Positions 12,285 to 22,754 are shown, numbered from the stretch's first letter. The stretch is 64,000 bases of DNA from Malacoraja senta (GCA_038087875.1 JAXLNO010002317.1:2728001-2792000), one strand, 5' to 3'. Numbers and translations are program-made. The notes: generated by a model from the sequence alone, not told the origin.

Positions 12285-12330
12285 ATGACGATGACAACAT
12301 TATTGTGGGCGCTCCTGACCCTCGCCCAGG
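12285..12330 (+). CDS. Copy A leader exon, MTMTTLLWALLTLAQ(G)
   Basis: ATG at 12285, hydrophobic core, donor CAG G|GTAGGT (phase 1); 46-nt coding length, same in copy B. Absent from the ORF track because it is short. Confidence 0.8.
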
Positions 12331-12443
12331 GTAGGTCCGTCACGCACTGAAGTCCGGCCGGGGGAAGTGATAGGACGTTACACCGTGGGGGAAAGCAGAG
12401 GGGGACGCACGGGGGGGTGGGATACACTGGGGGGGACGAAACA

Positions 12444-13095
12444 TAGACAACAGGTGCAGGAGTTGGCCATTCGGCCCTTCGAGCCAGCACCGCTATTCAC
12501 TGTGATCATGGCTGATCATCCCCAATCAGTACCCCGTTCCTGCCTTCTCCCCATATCCCCTGACTCCGCTATCTTTAAGAGCCCTATCTAGCTCTCTTTT
12601 CAATTCATCCCGGGAACCTGCCTCCACCGCCCTCTGAGGCAGAGAATTCCACAGACTCACAACTCTCTGGGTGAAAAAGTTTTTTCTCAACTCAGCTTTA
12701 AATGGCCTCCCCCTTATGCTTAAACTGTGGCCCCTGGTTCTGGACTCCCCCAACATCGGGAACATTTTTCCTGCATCTAGCTTGTCCAGACCTTTTATAA
12801 TTTTATACGTTTCTATAAAATCCCCTCTCATCCTTCTAAATTCCAGTGAATATAAGCCCAGCCGCTCCATTCTCTCAACATATGACTGTCCTGCCATCCC
12901 AGGAATTAACCTGGTGAACCAACGCTGGGCTCCCTCAATAGCAAGAATGTCCTTCCTCAAATTAGGAGACCAAAACTGCACACAATACTCCAGGTGTGGT
13001 CTCACCAGCGCCCTGTACAACTGCAGAAGGACCTCTTTGCTCCTATACTCAACTCCTCTTGTTATGAAGGCCAACAGGCTATTCGCTTTCTTCAC
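12444..13095 (-). mobile_element. CR1 3' fragment; paralogue about 51115-51775 (+)
   Basis: ORF 12526-13095: [31 protein letters not shown]. Confidence 0.88.
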
Positions 13096-13096
13096 T

Positions 13097-14400
13097 GTGT
13101 CTCTGTGACTCTGACTCTGTCTCTGTGACTCTCTCTCTGTGTCTCTGTGACTCTCTCTCTGTGTCTCTCTGACTCTTTATCTCTGTGACTGTGTCTCTGC
13201 GATTCTGTGTCTCTGTGACTGTGTCTGTGTCTCTGTATCTCTGTGACTCTGTGTCTCTGTCAAGTCAAGTCAAGTCACATTTATTTATATAGCACATTTA
13301 AAAAACAACTCTCGTTGACCAAAGTGCTTTACATTTGTTATAAGAATAGTATAAACAAACAAACTACATACATATATACATATAGCCCTCGCTCAGAGGA
13401 CGTCAGGAAAGGCTTGGGAGTACAGATACGTTTTTAGTCTAGACTTAAAGGAGTCGATGGAGGGGGCAGTTCTGATGGGAAGGGGGATGCTGTTCCACAT
13501 TCTAGGAGCTGCAACCGCAAAGGCCCGGTCGCCCCTGAGCTTATGCCTAGACCGCGGGATATTCAGCAACGCCAAGTCGGCCGATCTGAGGGGCCTGGAG
13601 GTGGTGTAGTGGGTGAGAAGACTTTTAATGTAGGTGGGGGCAAGCCCATTGAGGGCTTTGTAGACAAAGAGGAGGGTCTTGACATTTATTCAGAACCGCA
13701 CAGGGAGCCAGTGGAGAGAGGCCATGATCGGGGTGATGTGGTCCCTTTTTCGGGTGCCCATCAGGAGTCTCGCTGTGGCGTTTTGGACCAGTTGCAGGCG
13801 GGACAGGGAAGATTGGCTGATGCCAGTGTAAAGGGAGTTGCAGTAATCTAGGCGGGAGGAGATGAATGTGTGGATGATCTTTTCCAGGTCATCAAAGTGG
13901 AGGAATTGTTTTATTTTAGCTATCATCCGAAGCTGAAAGAAGCCAGCTTTTACCACGGCATTGACTTGTTTGTCAAATTTCAGTGCTGAGTCAAATATCA
14001 CGCCAAGGTGTTTGACGTGAGGTTTGAGTAGTGGGGTAAGGTTTCTAAGGCTGCCTGCTATCGTTTTGATTGAGTCCGAGGGGCCGAGAAGGATGACCTT
14101 AGACTTACTCTCATTTACTTGGAGGAAGTTCTGGGCCATCCAACACTTTATATCCTCGAGGCAGTGGGTAAGGTTAAACAGATTTGATTGTTTTTTGTGA
14201 CTCTGTGACTCTGTGTCTCTGTGTCTCTGTGTCTGTGTCTGTGTCTCTGTTTCTCTGTGTCTCTGTGACTCTGTGTCTCTGTGACTCTGTGTCTCTGTGT
14301 CTCTGTGTCTCTGTGTCTCTGTCTGTGTCTCTGTGTCTCTGTGACTCTGTGTCTCTGTGACTGTGTCTCTGTGTCTCTGTGACTGTGTCTCTCTCTCTCT
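13097..14400. repeat. (TCTGTGTC/TCTGTGAC)n simple repeat split by the L2 fragment
   Basis: Arrays at about 13097-13260 and 14197-14400; paralogues 49690-50020, 50938-51115 and 63200-63300. Confidence 0.85.
13258..14190 (-). mobile_element. L2-clade LINE 3' fragment
   Basis: HCLEDIKCWMAQNFLQVNESKS, ISSRLDYCNSL, HWLPV, GDRAFAVAAPRMWNSIP, FKSRLKTYLYSQAF; AATAAA plus (GACTT)n tail. Confidence 0.88.
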
Positions 14401-14404
14401 GCAG

Positions 14405-19779: not shown

Positions 19780-20860
19780 CACGTTATAGGAGCAGAATTA
19801 GGCCATTTGGCCCATCTAAACTACTCCGCCATTCAATCATGGCCGATCTATCTCTCCCTCCCAACCCCATTTTCCTGCCTTCTCCCCATAACCTCTGGCA
19901 CCCGTAATAATCAAGAATCTCTCTCTACCTTAAAAATATCCACTGACTTGTGGCCTTCACCGCCGTCTGTGGCAAAGAATCCCACAGATTCACCCCCCTC
20001 TGACTGAAGAAATTCCTCCTCATCTGCTTCCTAACAGAACGTCCTTTAATTCTGAGGCTGTGCCCTCTGGTCCTAGACTCTCCCACTAGTGGAAACATCC
20101 TCTCCACATCCACTCTATCCGGGCCTTTCATTATTCGGTGACGTTTCAATGAATCCCCCCCCCCCCTCGTTCTTCTAAACTCCAGCGAGGACAGGCCCAG
20201 TGCCGACAAACGTTCATCGTACGCTAACCCACTCATTCCTGGGATCGTTCTTGTAAACCTCCTCTGGACCCTCTCCAGAGCCGGCACATCCTTCCTCAGA
20301 TATGGGGCCCAAAATTCCTCTCAATATTCCAAATGTGGCCTGACCAGCCCCTTAAACGTTGGGATAGTCCCAGCCTCCTCTGGCAGCTCGTTCCAGCTCG
20401 TGTGGAAAAAGTTACCCATCAGATTGCTATTAAATCTTTTCCCCTTCACCTTGAACCTGTGTCCTCTAGTCCTCGATTCCCCTTCTCTGGGCAAGAGACT
20501 CTGTGCATCCACCCGACCTATTCCTCTCATGATTTTGTACACCTCTATAAGATCGCCCCTCATCCTCCTGCGCTCCAAGGAATAGAGTCCCAGCCTGCCC
20601 CAACCTCTCCCTGTAGCTCAGGCCCCTCGAATCCCAGCAACATCCTTGTAAATCTTCTCTGAACCCTTTCCAGCTCTACGACATATTTCCTGTAACACTG
20701 TGCCCAGAACTGAACACAATACTCTAAATGCGGCCTCACCAACGTCTTGTACAACTGCAACGTGTCCTCCCGACTTCTAGACTCAATACTCTGACTGATG
20801 AAGGCCAAAGTGCCAAAGGCCTTGTTGACCACCTTATCTACCTGCGACTCCATTCTGCAC
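19780..20860 (-). mobile_element. CR1 3' fragments of two subfamilies
   Basis: [29 protein letters not shown] in ORFs 19925-20287, 20321-20578 and 20560-20853. Confidence 0.82.
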
Positions 20861-21036
20861 CTTTGCTTATGACCTTATTGAATAATTGAAATGAATAAAT
20901 TTTATTAGCCAAGTATATACACATACAAGGAATTTGCCTTGGTGCTCCACTCGCAAGTAACAACACGATATACAGTAGACAATTAAAAATAAAACATTAT
21001 AATTTAAACATGTGAAGAATAGACAATAGACAATAG

Positions 21037-21894
21037 AGATTAGAGATTAGAGATTCCTTTATTTGTCATTCAGACCTTTCGGTCTGAACGAAATTTCGTT
21101 GCCTGCAGTCATACGTATAATAATAAATAACAAAACACACAATAAACACAAATTAACATCCACCACAGTGAGTTCACCAGGCACCTCCTCACTGTGACGG
21201 AGGCGAAAGTCTTAAAGTCTCTGTCTCTTCCCTCTTTGTTCTCCCTCTGCGCTGAGGCGATCCAGGCTTCTGATGTTGTGGCCCCGCCGGGTGATGGTAA
21301 GTCAGTCCCGCGGCTGAATCCATGCTCTGCGACGGGCCGGTTCAAACTCCGCGGCATGGGGTGGTCGAAGCTGCCGAAGCTGCCGCCCTCCAGTCCAGCG
21401 GACGCAGCTGTAGTTGCGGGAGCTCCAGAAAAACAGGTCACCCACCTGTGACCTGCGAGCTCCCGACGATGTCGTCCACTGGGCCCGCGGCCGAGCCTCC
21501 GGATTCAGGTCGCCACCAGCGTCCTCGGTCGCCACCACCGGAACGCTGGAATGCCACCGCAGCCCCGAAGTTGGCCAGCCTCGCGTTGGTAAGTCCTGGC
21601 TCTGCCTCCGGAGCCTCAAGGTCGGTCGGTCGCAGTTGGAGGCCGTCAGCTCCGCTACTAGGCCTCAGCGCAGACGGAGGCAGAGAAGGGGGATACGACA
21701 AAAAAAAGTCGCATTCCCCCGAAGGAAGAGACAAAAATCATGTTTCACCCACCCACCCCACACATACACAACCCAGTAAACTAAAATTTAACTAACACAG
21801 GACAAAAGAAAACAACAAAAAAAGTAAAAACAGACGGACTGCAGGCGAGCCGCTGCTGTTCAACAGCGCCGCCACTTCTGGAGTGGCGGCGCTG
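21037..21894 (-). mobile_element. GC-rich non-coding retroposon, unclassified family
   Basis: 3' stem-loop, AATAAA and (AATCTCT)n tail; 13-bp terminal hairpin 21864-21894; absent from the B arm. Relatives at 39142-40877 (-, interrupted), about 39290-40175 (+) and about 55545-56100 (-). Confidence 0.6.
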
Positions 21895-22457
21895 TAGGTG
21901 CAGGAGTAGGCCATTTGGCTCTTTGAGCCAGCACCGCCATTCAATGTGATCATGACTGATCATCCCCAATCAGTACCCCGTTCCTGCCTTCTCCCCATAT
22001 CCCCTGACTCCGCTATCTTTAAGAGCTCAATCTAACTCTCTCTTGAAAGCATCCAGAGAACCGGCCTCCACCGCCCTCTGAGGCAGAGAATTCCACAGAC
22101 TCATAACTTTCTGTGAGAAAAATTGTTTCCTCATCTCCGTTCTAAATGGCCGACCCCATAGTCTTAAACTGTGTGGCCCCTGGTTCTGGACTCCCCCAAC
22201 ATCGGGAACATGTTTCCTGCCTCTAGCGTGTCCGAACCCTTCATAATCTTATATGTTTTAATAAGATATCCTCTCATCCTTCTAAACTCCAGAGTATACA
22301 AGCCCAGCTGCTCCATTCTCTCAGCATATGGCAGACCCGCCATCCCGGGAATTTTTTACTGTGGCCCCACCCATTTTAAAGTCCCTGGAGATGATGGTTC
22401 CCAGAAACTTAAACGACTCCACAGATGTGAAGCTTAAACTTGTCGTTCCTTCACCAG

Positions 22458-22754
22458 GAGAGCTGGAAACACCGGAGATCGGCGACCCAGGACAGGTGGT
22501 GGAGGGGAGGGCGGTGTCTCTGACCTGCTCCCTGCACAGTTACTGCGCGGACGACGTTCCTCTCCTCCTCTGGCAGCCCCCTCCCCACCGCCCTGCCGTG
22601 ACCCGCATCGTTTACTGGGACCAGCACTGGATCCACTCCAGCGAGGTGGAATTCATGCCCAGCTCCGACGAAAGACAGTGGTCGGTTTCGTGCAAGGCCA
22701 CATTTGTTACCAGGACCTCTTCCGTCCGAACAATGAGATCGCTGGACATCAAGT
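22458..22754 (+). CDS. Copy A C2-set domain 5 (Siglec domain-2 type), intact
   Basis: CACCAG|GAG acceptor, AAG T|GTAAGT donor, 297 nt; ELETPEIGDPGQVVEGRAVSLTCSLHSYC..W..VSCKATF. Confidence 0.9.

Follow-up and report, generated by a model that had tools for sequence, protein, structure and literature searches.

A CD22-like gene of sharks and rays with two Siglec V-C2 units, traced from three probably non-working copies in the skate Malacoraja senta

Can a Siglec carry a complete sialic-acid-binding module in the interior of its chain, in addition to the one at its tip? Members of the family are described as having one sialic-acid-binding V-set domain, at the N-terminus (PMC12837193). The question is raised by a stretch of 64,000 nt from the skate Malacoraja senta (GCA_038087875.1 JAXLNO010002317.1:2728001-2792000), the whole of which is referred to here as the window and in which positions are counted from the first letter. 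An earlier note on this DNA proposed that it holds a single gene for a Siglec-like receptor with two such modules, in the order V-C2-C2-V-C2. Comparison with public sequences upholds that proposal and indicates that V1-C2-C2-V2-C2... is the layout of a single gene, in which a C2 domain lies between two complete Siglec V-C2 units; the order recurs in about 18 elasmobranch species. The window itself holds three young copies of the 5' part of this skate CD22-like gene (copy 1 on the plus strand, an inverted copy 2 and an incomplete copy 3), which are probably not in working order.

The window sequence is that of a vertebrate, cartilaginous-fish-like gene, with short immunoglobulin (Ig) exons set amid debris of short and long interspersed nuclear elements (SINEs and LINEs). 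Copy 1 opens, on the plus strand, with a leader exon (12285-12330; MTMTTLLWALLTLAQ) that ends in a phase 1 donor, is identical in copy 2 and resembles the N-terminus of a Rhinoraja model, MTRTSLLWALLTLALG. It is followed by the first Siglec V-set exon, V1 (14405-14758, 354 nt, open); the C2-set exon D2 (16861-17147, 287 nt), with an extra Cys in the motif FAC and its frame broken by a 1-nt deletion after 16973; the C2-set exon D3 (18212-18487, 276 nt); the second, internal Siglec V-set exon, V2 (18951-19292, 342 nt, open); and the C2-set exon D5 (22458-22754, 297 nt, open), with an extra Cys in the motif SYC. Exon borders are AG/GT throughout and every junction is phase 1. The two V-set exons are thus real phase 1 exons, each with a C2 exon bearing an extra Cys behind it, as had been proposed; D5, however, has its start at 22458 and not at 22455. 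The claim that both V-set exons are in frame with their neighbours stands as regards phase but fails for V1 in copy 1 as assembled, since the deletion in D2 leaves it without an open frame to its neighbours.

Both V-sets are, on the evidence of profiles, motifs and alignments, Siglec-type V domains. The exon translations contain the motifs QWEV, GTCV, YYFRME and KYS in V1 and GWAV, GSCV, YFFRLE and KWS in V2, as originally quoted, and both exons score above cut-off for Pfam V-set and for Ig_CD22 (PF24518), at 54.5 bits for V2 and 32.9 bits for V1. Each V-set has three Cys residues, a B-E pair and one for an interdomain bond, and the C2 domain that follows has the extra Cys. Among solved structures the matches of V2 are almost exclusively Siglecs, with sialoadhesin at the top (3.5e-14). 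Three residues of V2 (the N-terminal Trp, the YFFRLE Arg and the KWS Trp) align with three in sialoadhesin (a Trp, the YNFRFE Arg and the RW Trp), which we take to be W2, R97 and W106. V1 is more diverged and matches Siglec-5, sialoadhesin and CD33, together with pIgR; V1 and V2 are 35% identical. The domain scan and structure prediction that had been suggested as checks point the same way. V2-D5 was modelled with AlphaFold from the orthologue of Amblyraja, the annotated relative nearest to the window (85-88% identical), and the model has a predicted local distance difference test score (pLDDT) of 86. It superposes over both domains on MAG Ig1-3 and on CD22 d1-d3 with template modelling (TM) scores of 0.72-0.79, and its top 36 structural matches are all Siglecs, MAG Ig1-3 being the best (E 8e-20). 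V2-D5 is therefore modelled in the MAG/CD22 d1-d2 arrangement, with a predicted interdomain disulfide. V1 lies where a Siglec V-set is expected, at the mature N-terminus; V2 does not, and directly follows D3.

If V2 began a gene of its own, it would need a leader. The D3-V2 intron (18488-18950, 463 nt) is filled with SINE copies and contains no leader-like exon: no ATG-started hydrophobic or signal-peptide-like open reading frame ending at an in-phase donor was found in it, in agreement with the earlier note, and a search of the corresponding introns of Pristis (552 nt) and Amblyraja (614 nt) likewise found no leader before V2. A V2 with its own internal leader is accordingly rejected for these three introns. 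The juxtaposition of D3 and V2 occurs twice in the window, in copies 1 and 2, and at the sawfish locus four exons of the D2-D3-V2-D5 region lie within 2.7 kb. All of the NCBI isoforms listed retain both V-sets.

Support for the two-unit layout comes also from other elasmobranchs. When 1.8 billion representative sequences were searched, profile-free, with the V2 exon, long proteins came up whose V2 match lies at about residues 320-450 and which have a second V-set match at the N-terminus. These are the RefSeq 'B-cell receptor CD22-like' proteins of Pristis, Carcharodon, Heterodontus, Chiloscyllium, Pristiophorus and Rhinoraja, among them the models of Pristis pectinata (XP_051901441/2), Carcharodon carcharias (XP_041037096-9), Heterodontus francisci (XP_067874680/1) and Rhinoraja longicauda (XP_078287875). 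Exon-by-exon BLAST gave the order V1-D2-D3-V2-D5-X-Y-Z as common to the window and the orthologue models, X, Y and Z being further C2-type exons. To these a further search could add Cetorhinus, Mustelus, two species of Scyliorhinus, Rhincodon, two of Mobula, Hemitrygon and Hypanus, the ten additional models covering D2-D3-V2-D5 at 94-100%. In all, about 18 species have RefSeq models with the two-unit order. Identity to the window by domain is 31-63% for sharks and Pristis, 59-80% for Rhinoraja and 84-91% for Amblyraja and Leucoraja, and the RefSeq models are, to judge from these alignments, orthologues or co-orthologues of the window gene.

Within this set the two V-sets keep their separate identities. 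V1 of the window is nearest to the first V-set of the orthologues (41-72%) and V2 to the second (44-80%), whereas cross pairs reach 33-38%. In sharks and rays alike each V-set thus clusters with the one in the same position, from which it follows that the V1/V2 duplication is old, as had been suggested. The two-unit layout accordingly appears to predate the split between sharks and rays and to be the normal form of elasmobranch 'CD22-like' proteins. Mean column identity among the elasmobranch orthologues is 60% in each lectin unit, and in each unit the three V-set and three C2 Cys residues are invariant (12-17 orthologues). The F-strand Arg is retained in 20/20 proteins in V2 and in at least 15 of 17 in V1, and the aromatic residues of the A- and G-strands are near-invariant. 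A sawfish paralogue labelled 'MAG-like' (XP_051901447) also starts with V1-D2-D3-V2-D5; its V1 has Gln in place of the Arg (YYFQMK), while the Arg of V2 is kept.

Intact orthologues continue through 12-13 Ig domains to a transmembrane segment and a cytoplasmic tail in which an immunoreceptor tyrosine-based inhibitory motif (ITIM), YENx and a further ITIM follow one another as in mammalian CD22. The sawfish protein, with about 13 Ig domains, has a tail containing VVYSVV, TVYENM, VVYSQV, DDYENI, ISYTTV and IEYTNL, and the Pristis tail is collinear with that of marmoset CD22 (VIYSVL...DDYENV...IHYSELI; E 0.003). Transmembrane and tail exons were sought in the window by tblastn with the Pristis and Rhinoraja C-termini, and chance matches only were obtained; around the copies the window holds only repeats and further copies.

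What, then, does the window contain? Self-alignment revealed an inverted copy on the minus strand, in which about 55.4 to 37.1 kb pairs with 7.2 to 33.6 kb, together with a partial third copy, direct relative to copy 2, from 64.0 to 58.9 kb. The earlier account had the exon set of copy 1 right but missed both copy 2 (51919 to about 36278) and copy 3 (63042-58980), each on the minus strand, as well as the frame defects. In copy 2 the leader exon (51874-51919) is followed by V1 (49334-49686, 353 nt, its frame broken by a 1-nt deletion), D2 (46927-47214, 288 nt, open, Pfam C2-set_2), D3 (45531-45806, open), V2 (44724-45065, open, 98% identical to copy 1) and D5 (42162-42458, open). Next comes the X-type C2 exon (41519-41798, 280 nt), in which an extra C in a C-run puts it out of frame when spliced from D5, the expected frame being taken from the Amblyraja protein; then the Y-type exon (37467-37745, open) and the Z-type exon (36278-36542, 265 nt, two 1-nt deletions). 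Copy 3, also on the minus strand, has V1 (62691-63042, 352 nt, two 1-nt deletions), D2 (60345-60632, open) and D3 (58980-59256, 277 nt, a 1-nt insertion); its match ends at 58876, inside the D3-V2 intron, and no V2 lies beyond. In copy 1, D2 has one A fewer after 16973 than the other two copies (GGG-TGG against GGGATGG) and its frame runs to a stop (...RWRGWMV*). The X exon is absent after D5, the match to copy 2 stopping at 22867, and a Z-type C2 exon (30257-30523, plus strand, open) comes, out of the expected order, ahead of a Y-type exon (33005-33283, plus strand) with an in-frame TAG at 33139, a substitution of TAC.

The copies are 93-98% identical with introns counted, and exons have diverged between them as much as introns. 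The inverted pair is unlikely to be a plain assembly palindrome: its two arms are 2-7% apart, and most of the differences are substitutions. Single-nucleotide indels are about equally dense in exons and introns (2/8 fall in exons in the V1-D2 block, which is 17% exon). Between copies 1 and 2, the ratio of the proportions of nonsynonymous and synonymous differences (pN/pS) comes to 0.6 in the first unit and 1.5 elsewhere, on changes too few to tell the units apart. Duplicates free of constraint would show this pattern, and so would a poorly polished assembly of a repeated region rich in gaps. Since every copy has frame defects, exons have diverged as fast as introns and no transmembrane or tail exon was found, the copies, young paralogues of the 5' part of the gene, are probably not working genes.

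Several features of the introns and flanks of these copies may be recorded. The D2-D3 intron of copy 1 contains a run of N (17996-18144), which starts 848 nt past the D2 donor (17147|gt) and ends 67 nt ahead of the D3 acceptor (ag|18212). The run is wholly intronic and both flanking exons are phase 1, so that the gap cannot alter the frame and could only hide an exon; in orthologue proteins D3 directly succeeds D2, and in the sawfish the intron between them measures 365 nt. A gap in copy 2 (45863-46036) lies at the matching position, and both adjoin a SINE-type element. SINE copies starting 'tagtttagtttagagatacag..ggaaacaggcccttcggccc' are found in 18488-18950, where one begins immediately 3' of the D3 donor, and at many other sites, for example 17940-17995 and 45100-45530. 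A LINE inserted in copy 1, after D5 and ahead of the following Ig exon, is marked by an open frame of 525 aa on the minus strand (25765-27339) with endonuclease- and reverse-transcriptase-like sequence. Purine-rich (GA/GGA) tracts of low complexity lie just upstream of the leaders of copy 1 (10000-12250) and copy 2 (52200-52700), and (TGTGTCTC)n microsatellites flank V1.

A number of observations weigh against this account of the gene and of the window. There are 11 N gaps in the 64 kb, and of the nine defects eight are indels of 1 nt, a number of which lie in short homopolymers; assembly error would fit these as well. In four public sequencing runs that are DNA-like (their contigs continue into introns), every contig has the extra A at 16973, although these contigs, compared over the D2 exon, may derive from copies 2 or 3 or from further paralogues. 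The orthologue proteins are automatic gene predictions. In public RNA-labelled runs at most 0.09 of the sampled words were present, probably from SINEs, and the V2 exon in none; a V2-exon search of protein fragments derived from transcripts found none, and searches with the elasmobranch orthologue proteins returned no elasmobranch entries from run assemblies. Finally, D3 is attached to the internal V2 a few residues before the A-strand Trp and could hinder its site.

The first of these points bear on an explanation that is unlikely but retains some force, namely that the copies are intact and working, and that poor assembly of repeats accounts for the frameshifts, for the unusual succession of exons past D5 and for the absence of tail exons. 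The N gaps, the predominance of 1-nt indels, the in-frame A in the contigs of all four runs and an indel rate that is equal in introns are what it would lead one to expect. Set against them, the TAG at 33139 is a substitution; in 3.8 kb between copies there are 85 mismatches to 18 indels, which is not an indel-dominated error pattern; copy 3 stops within the D3-V2 intron; and the possible origin of the run contigs in other paralogues means that copy 1 is not cleared by them. The deletion in D2 of copy 1 is thus unconfirmed, and is not disproved. The same contigs (16831-17016) are informative in another respect. They include a further D2 variant that is absent from the window (T at 16871, C at 16883 and 3 nt missing at 16893), their upstream introns diverge at about 16830, and in one run a contig departs from the exon at 17016 into unrelated sequence. 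In that run the depth of the exon is 4-7 times that of the adjoining intron, which implies a multi-copy family. The genome or genomes of these runs contain more copies of the CD22-like family.

A second explanation, rather improbable in our estimation, accepts the defects but reads them as decay of the first unit: V1-D2-D3 would be a relic in skates, the leader splicing to V2, or only a short V1-D2-D3 product being secreted by way of the weak D3 donor and the stop that follows it, with one effective lectin unit. Exon skipping would preserve the frame, all exons being phase 1, and every copy in the window is defective in V1, D2 or D3. Other skates add to the case. The Amblyraja radiata locus (JAAGWR010000077.1) has D3-V2 but neither V1 nor D2 in the 10 kb upstream (1-10000), and of the Rhinoraja models one is without D2 and another starts inside V1, most of which is missing. 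In both the window and Amblyraja the D3 donor is weak (gttcgt; TACG|gttcgt in copy 1), with a stop three or four codons on (YGS* or YGSL*; three codons beyond the exon, YGS*, in copy 1). The Amblyraja RefSeq model, annotated as 'sialoadhesin-like', opens with an unlikely exon of 14 residues (MVQTNLYANIYGRY). Yet the defects are not peculiar to the first unit, being found also in the second unit and beyond it (X and Z of copy 2, Y of copy 1); V1 of copy 1 is intact, with all of its key residues; the deletion in its D2 is the unconfirmed one; and in sharks and other rays the first unit is as well conserved as the second.

That two adjacent genes, V1-D2-D3 and V2-D5-..., have been wrongly merged, as predictors often do in tandem Ig arrays, is very unlikely, even though one Rhinoraja model extends past its C2 exons into another V2-type exon, teleost clusters hold single-unit and multi-unit models side by side and the junction is predicted from DNA only, because in every species V2 would lack a signal peptide and the upstream unit a membrane anchor, no leader, transmembrane or tail exon separates D3 from V2 in the window, Pristis or Amblyraja, the intervening intron is only 463-614 nt and phase-compatible, and the adjacency is kept in about 18 species.

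On the preferred explanation, that of a single two-unit gene with probably defective young copies in the window, one leader exon would be followed by V1-C2-C2 and V2-C2-C2... in a single reading frame. The intact protein would be an inhibitory receptor bearing ITIMs, could engage sialylated ligands both at its tip and at a second site about three domains further down, and may signal via the tyrosines of its tail. It is tempting to go further and to suggest that elasmobranch CD22 is truly bivalent or of dual specificity, with both the tip and the internal V-set binding, and has been kept so since before the shark-ray split; this form may even be ancestral, the single-V CD22 of bony vertebrates having arisen by loss of the first unit. 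This is a tentative suggestion, which we hold possible rather than probable. If it is correct, a Siglec lectin site would work away from the N-terminus of its chain. Two kept lectin units raise the possibilities of built-in bivalency and of two specificities, for example for cis and trans ligands, and, for the oldest jawed vertebrates to possess adaptive immunity, of B-cell co-receptor regulation that follows another geometry. They matter, too, for the question of how CD22, MAG and sialoadhesin arose. The window itself adds little to this, beyond showing that the CD22-like family is multi-copy and turning over in skates.

It remains to place the layout among described Siglecs. The earlier note did not recognise the architecture from known families. 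It is in fact already in RefSeq for about 18 elasmobranchs under a generic name, and in lower vertebrates repeated V-sets are common among predictions of Siglec-like proteins; a paper describing it was not found. A published study of fish Siglecs dealt with teleosts only and assumed a single V-set (PMC7226832), and our search for literature on cartilaginous-fish Siglecs or an internal lectin unit found none, most subscription journals lying outside that search, so that an earlier description is possible. The two-unit layout is best regarded as a genuine and conserved variant within a known family, and one that has apparently gone undescribed.

In human SIGLEC12 (S2V, Siglec-XII) two V-sets likewise occur in a single chain, but they are adjacent, as Ig1 and Ig2, with Ig3 as the first C2 domain (PMC6288428). 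About 300 residues and two C2 domains separate the elasmobranch V-sets, each of which has its own Cys-linked C2 domain; the distinction from SIGLEC12 drawn originally is therefore sound. Repeated Siglec-type V-sets are also found in Siglec-like predictions from teleosts, lungfish, amphibians, turtles and hagfish. Among the top 150 relatives, 108 carry at least two V-sets, and the spacings of those of Siglec type are about 110, 200 or 320 residues. These lower-vertebrate proteins are, however, not orthologous to the V1/V2 pair and are known from predictions, many of which may be fused tandem genes. Clusters in Mastacembelus contain models of 300 and 1300 aa together, and some of the multi-V predictions are surely such fusions. 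MAG (Siglec-4) and sialoadhesin (Siglec-1) provide, respectively, the best structural match (MAG Ig1-3) and the best sequence match (the sialoadhesin V-set) of V2, but each has one N-terminal lectin domain and a different tail. The RefSeq elasmobranch models extend over the full length and include a transmembrane segment and an ITIM tail, whereas the window copies are truncated or rearranged in the region from beyond D5 to Z and have frame defects.

A further parallel is mammalian CD22 (Siglec-2), the gene for which adjoins MAG. Like the elasmobranch form, it has a Siglec V-set with a disulfide-linked C2 domain, the V2-D5 model fitting CD22 d1-d3 with TM scores of 0.76-0.79, and its tail shows the same order of ITIM, DDYENx and ITIM as that of Pristis. 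It differs in having a single N-terminal V-set followed by C2 domains, six in number, whereas the elasmobranch form has a V-C2-C2 unit ahead of the CD22-like V-set.

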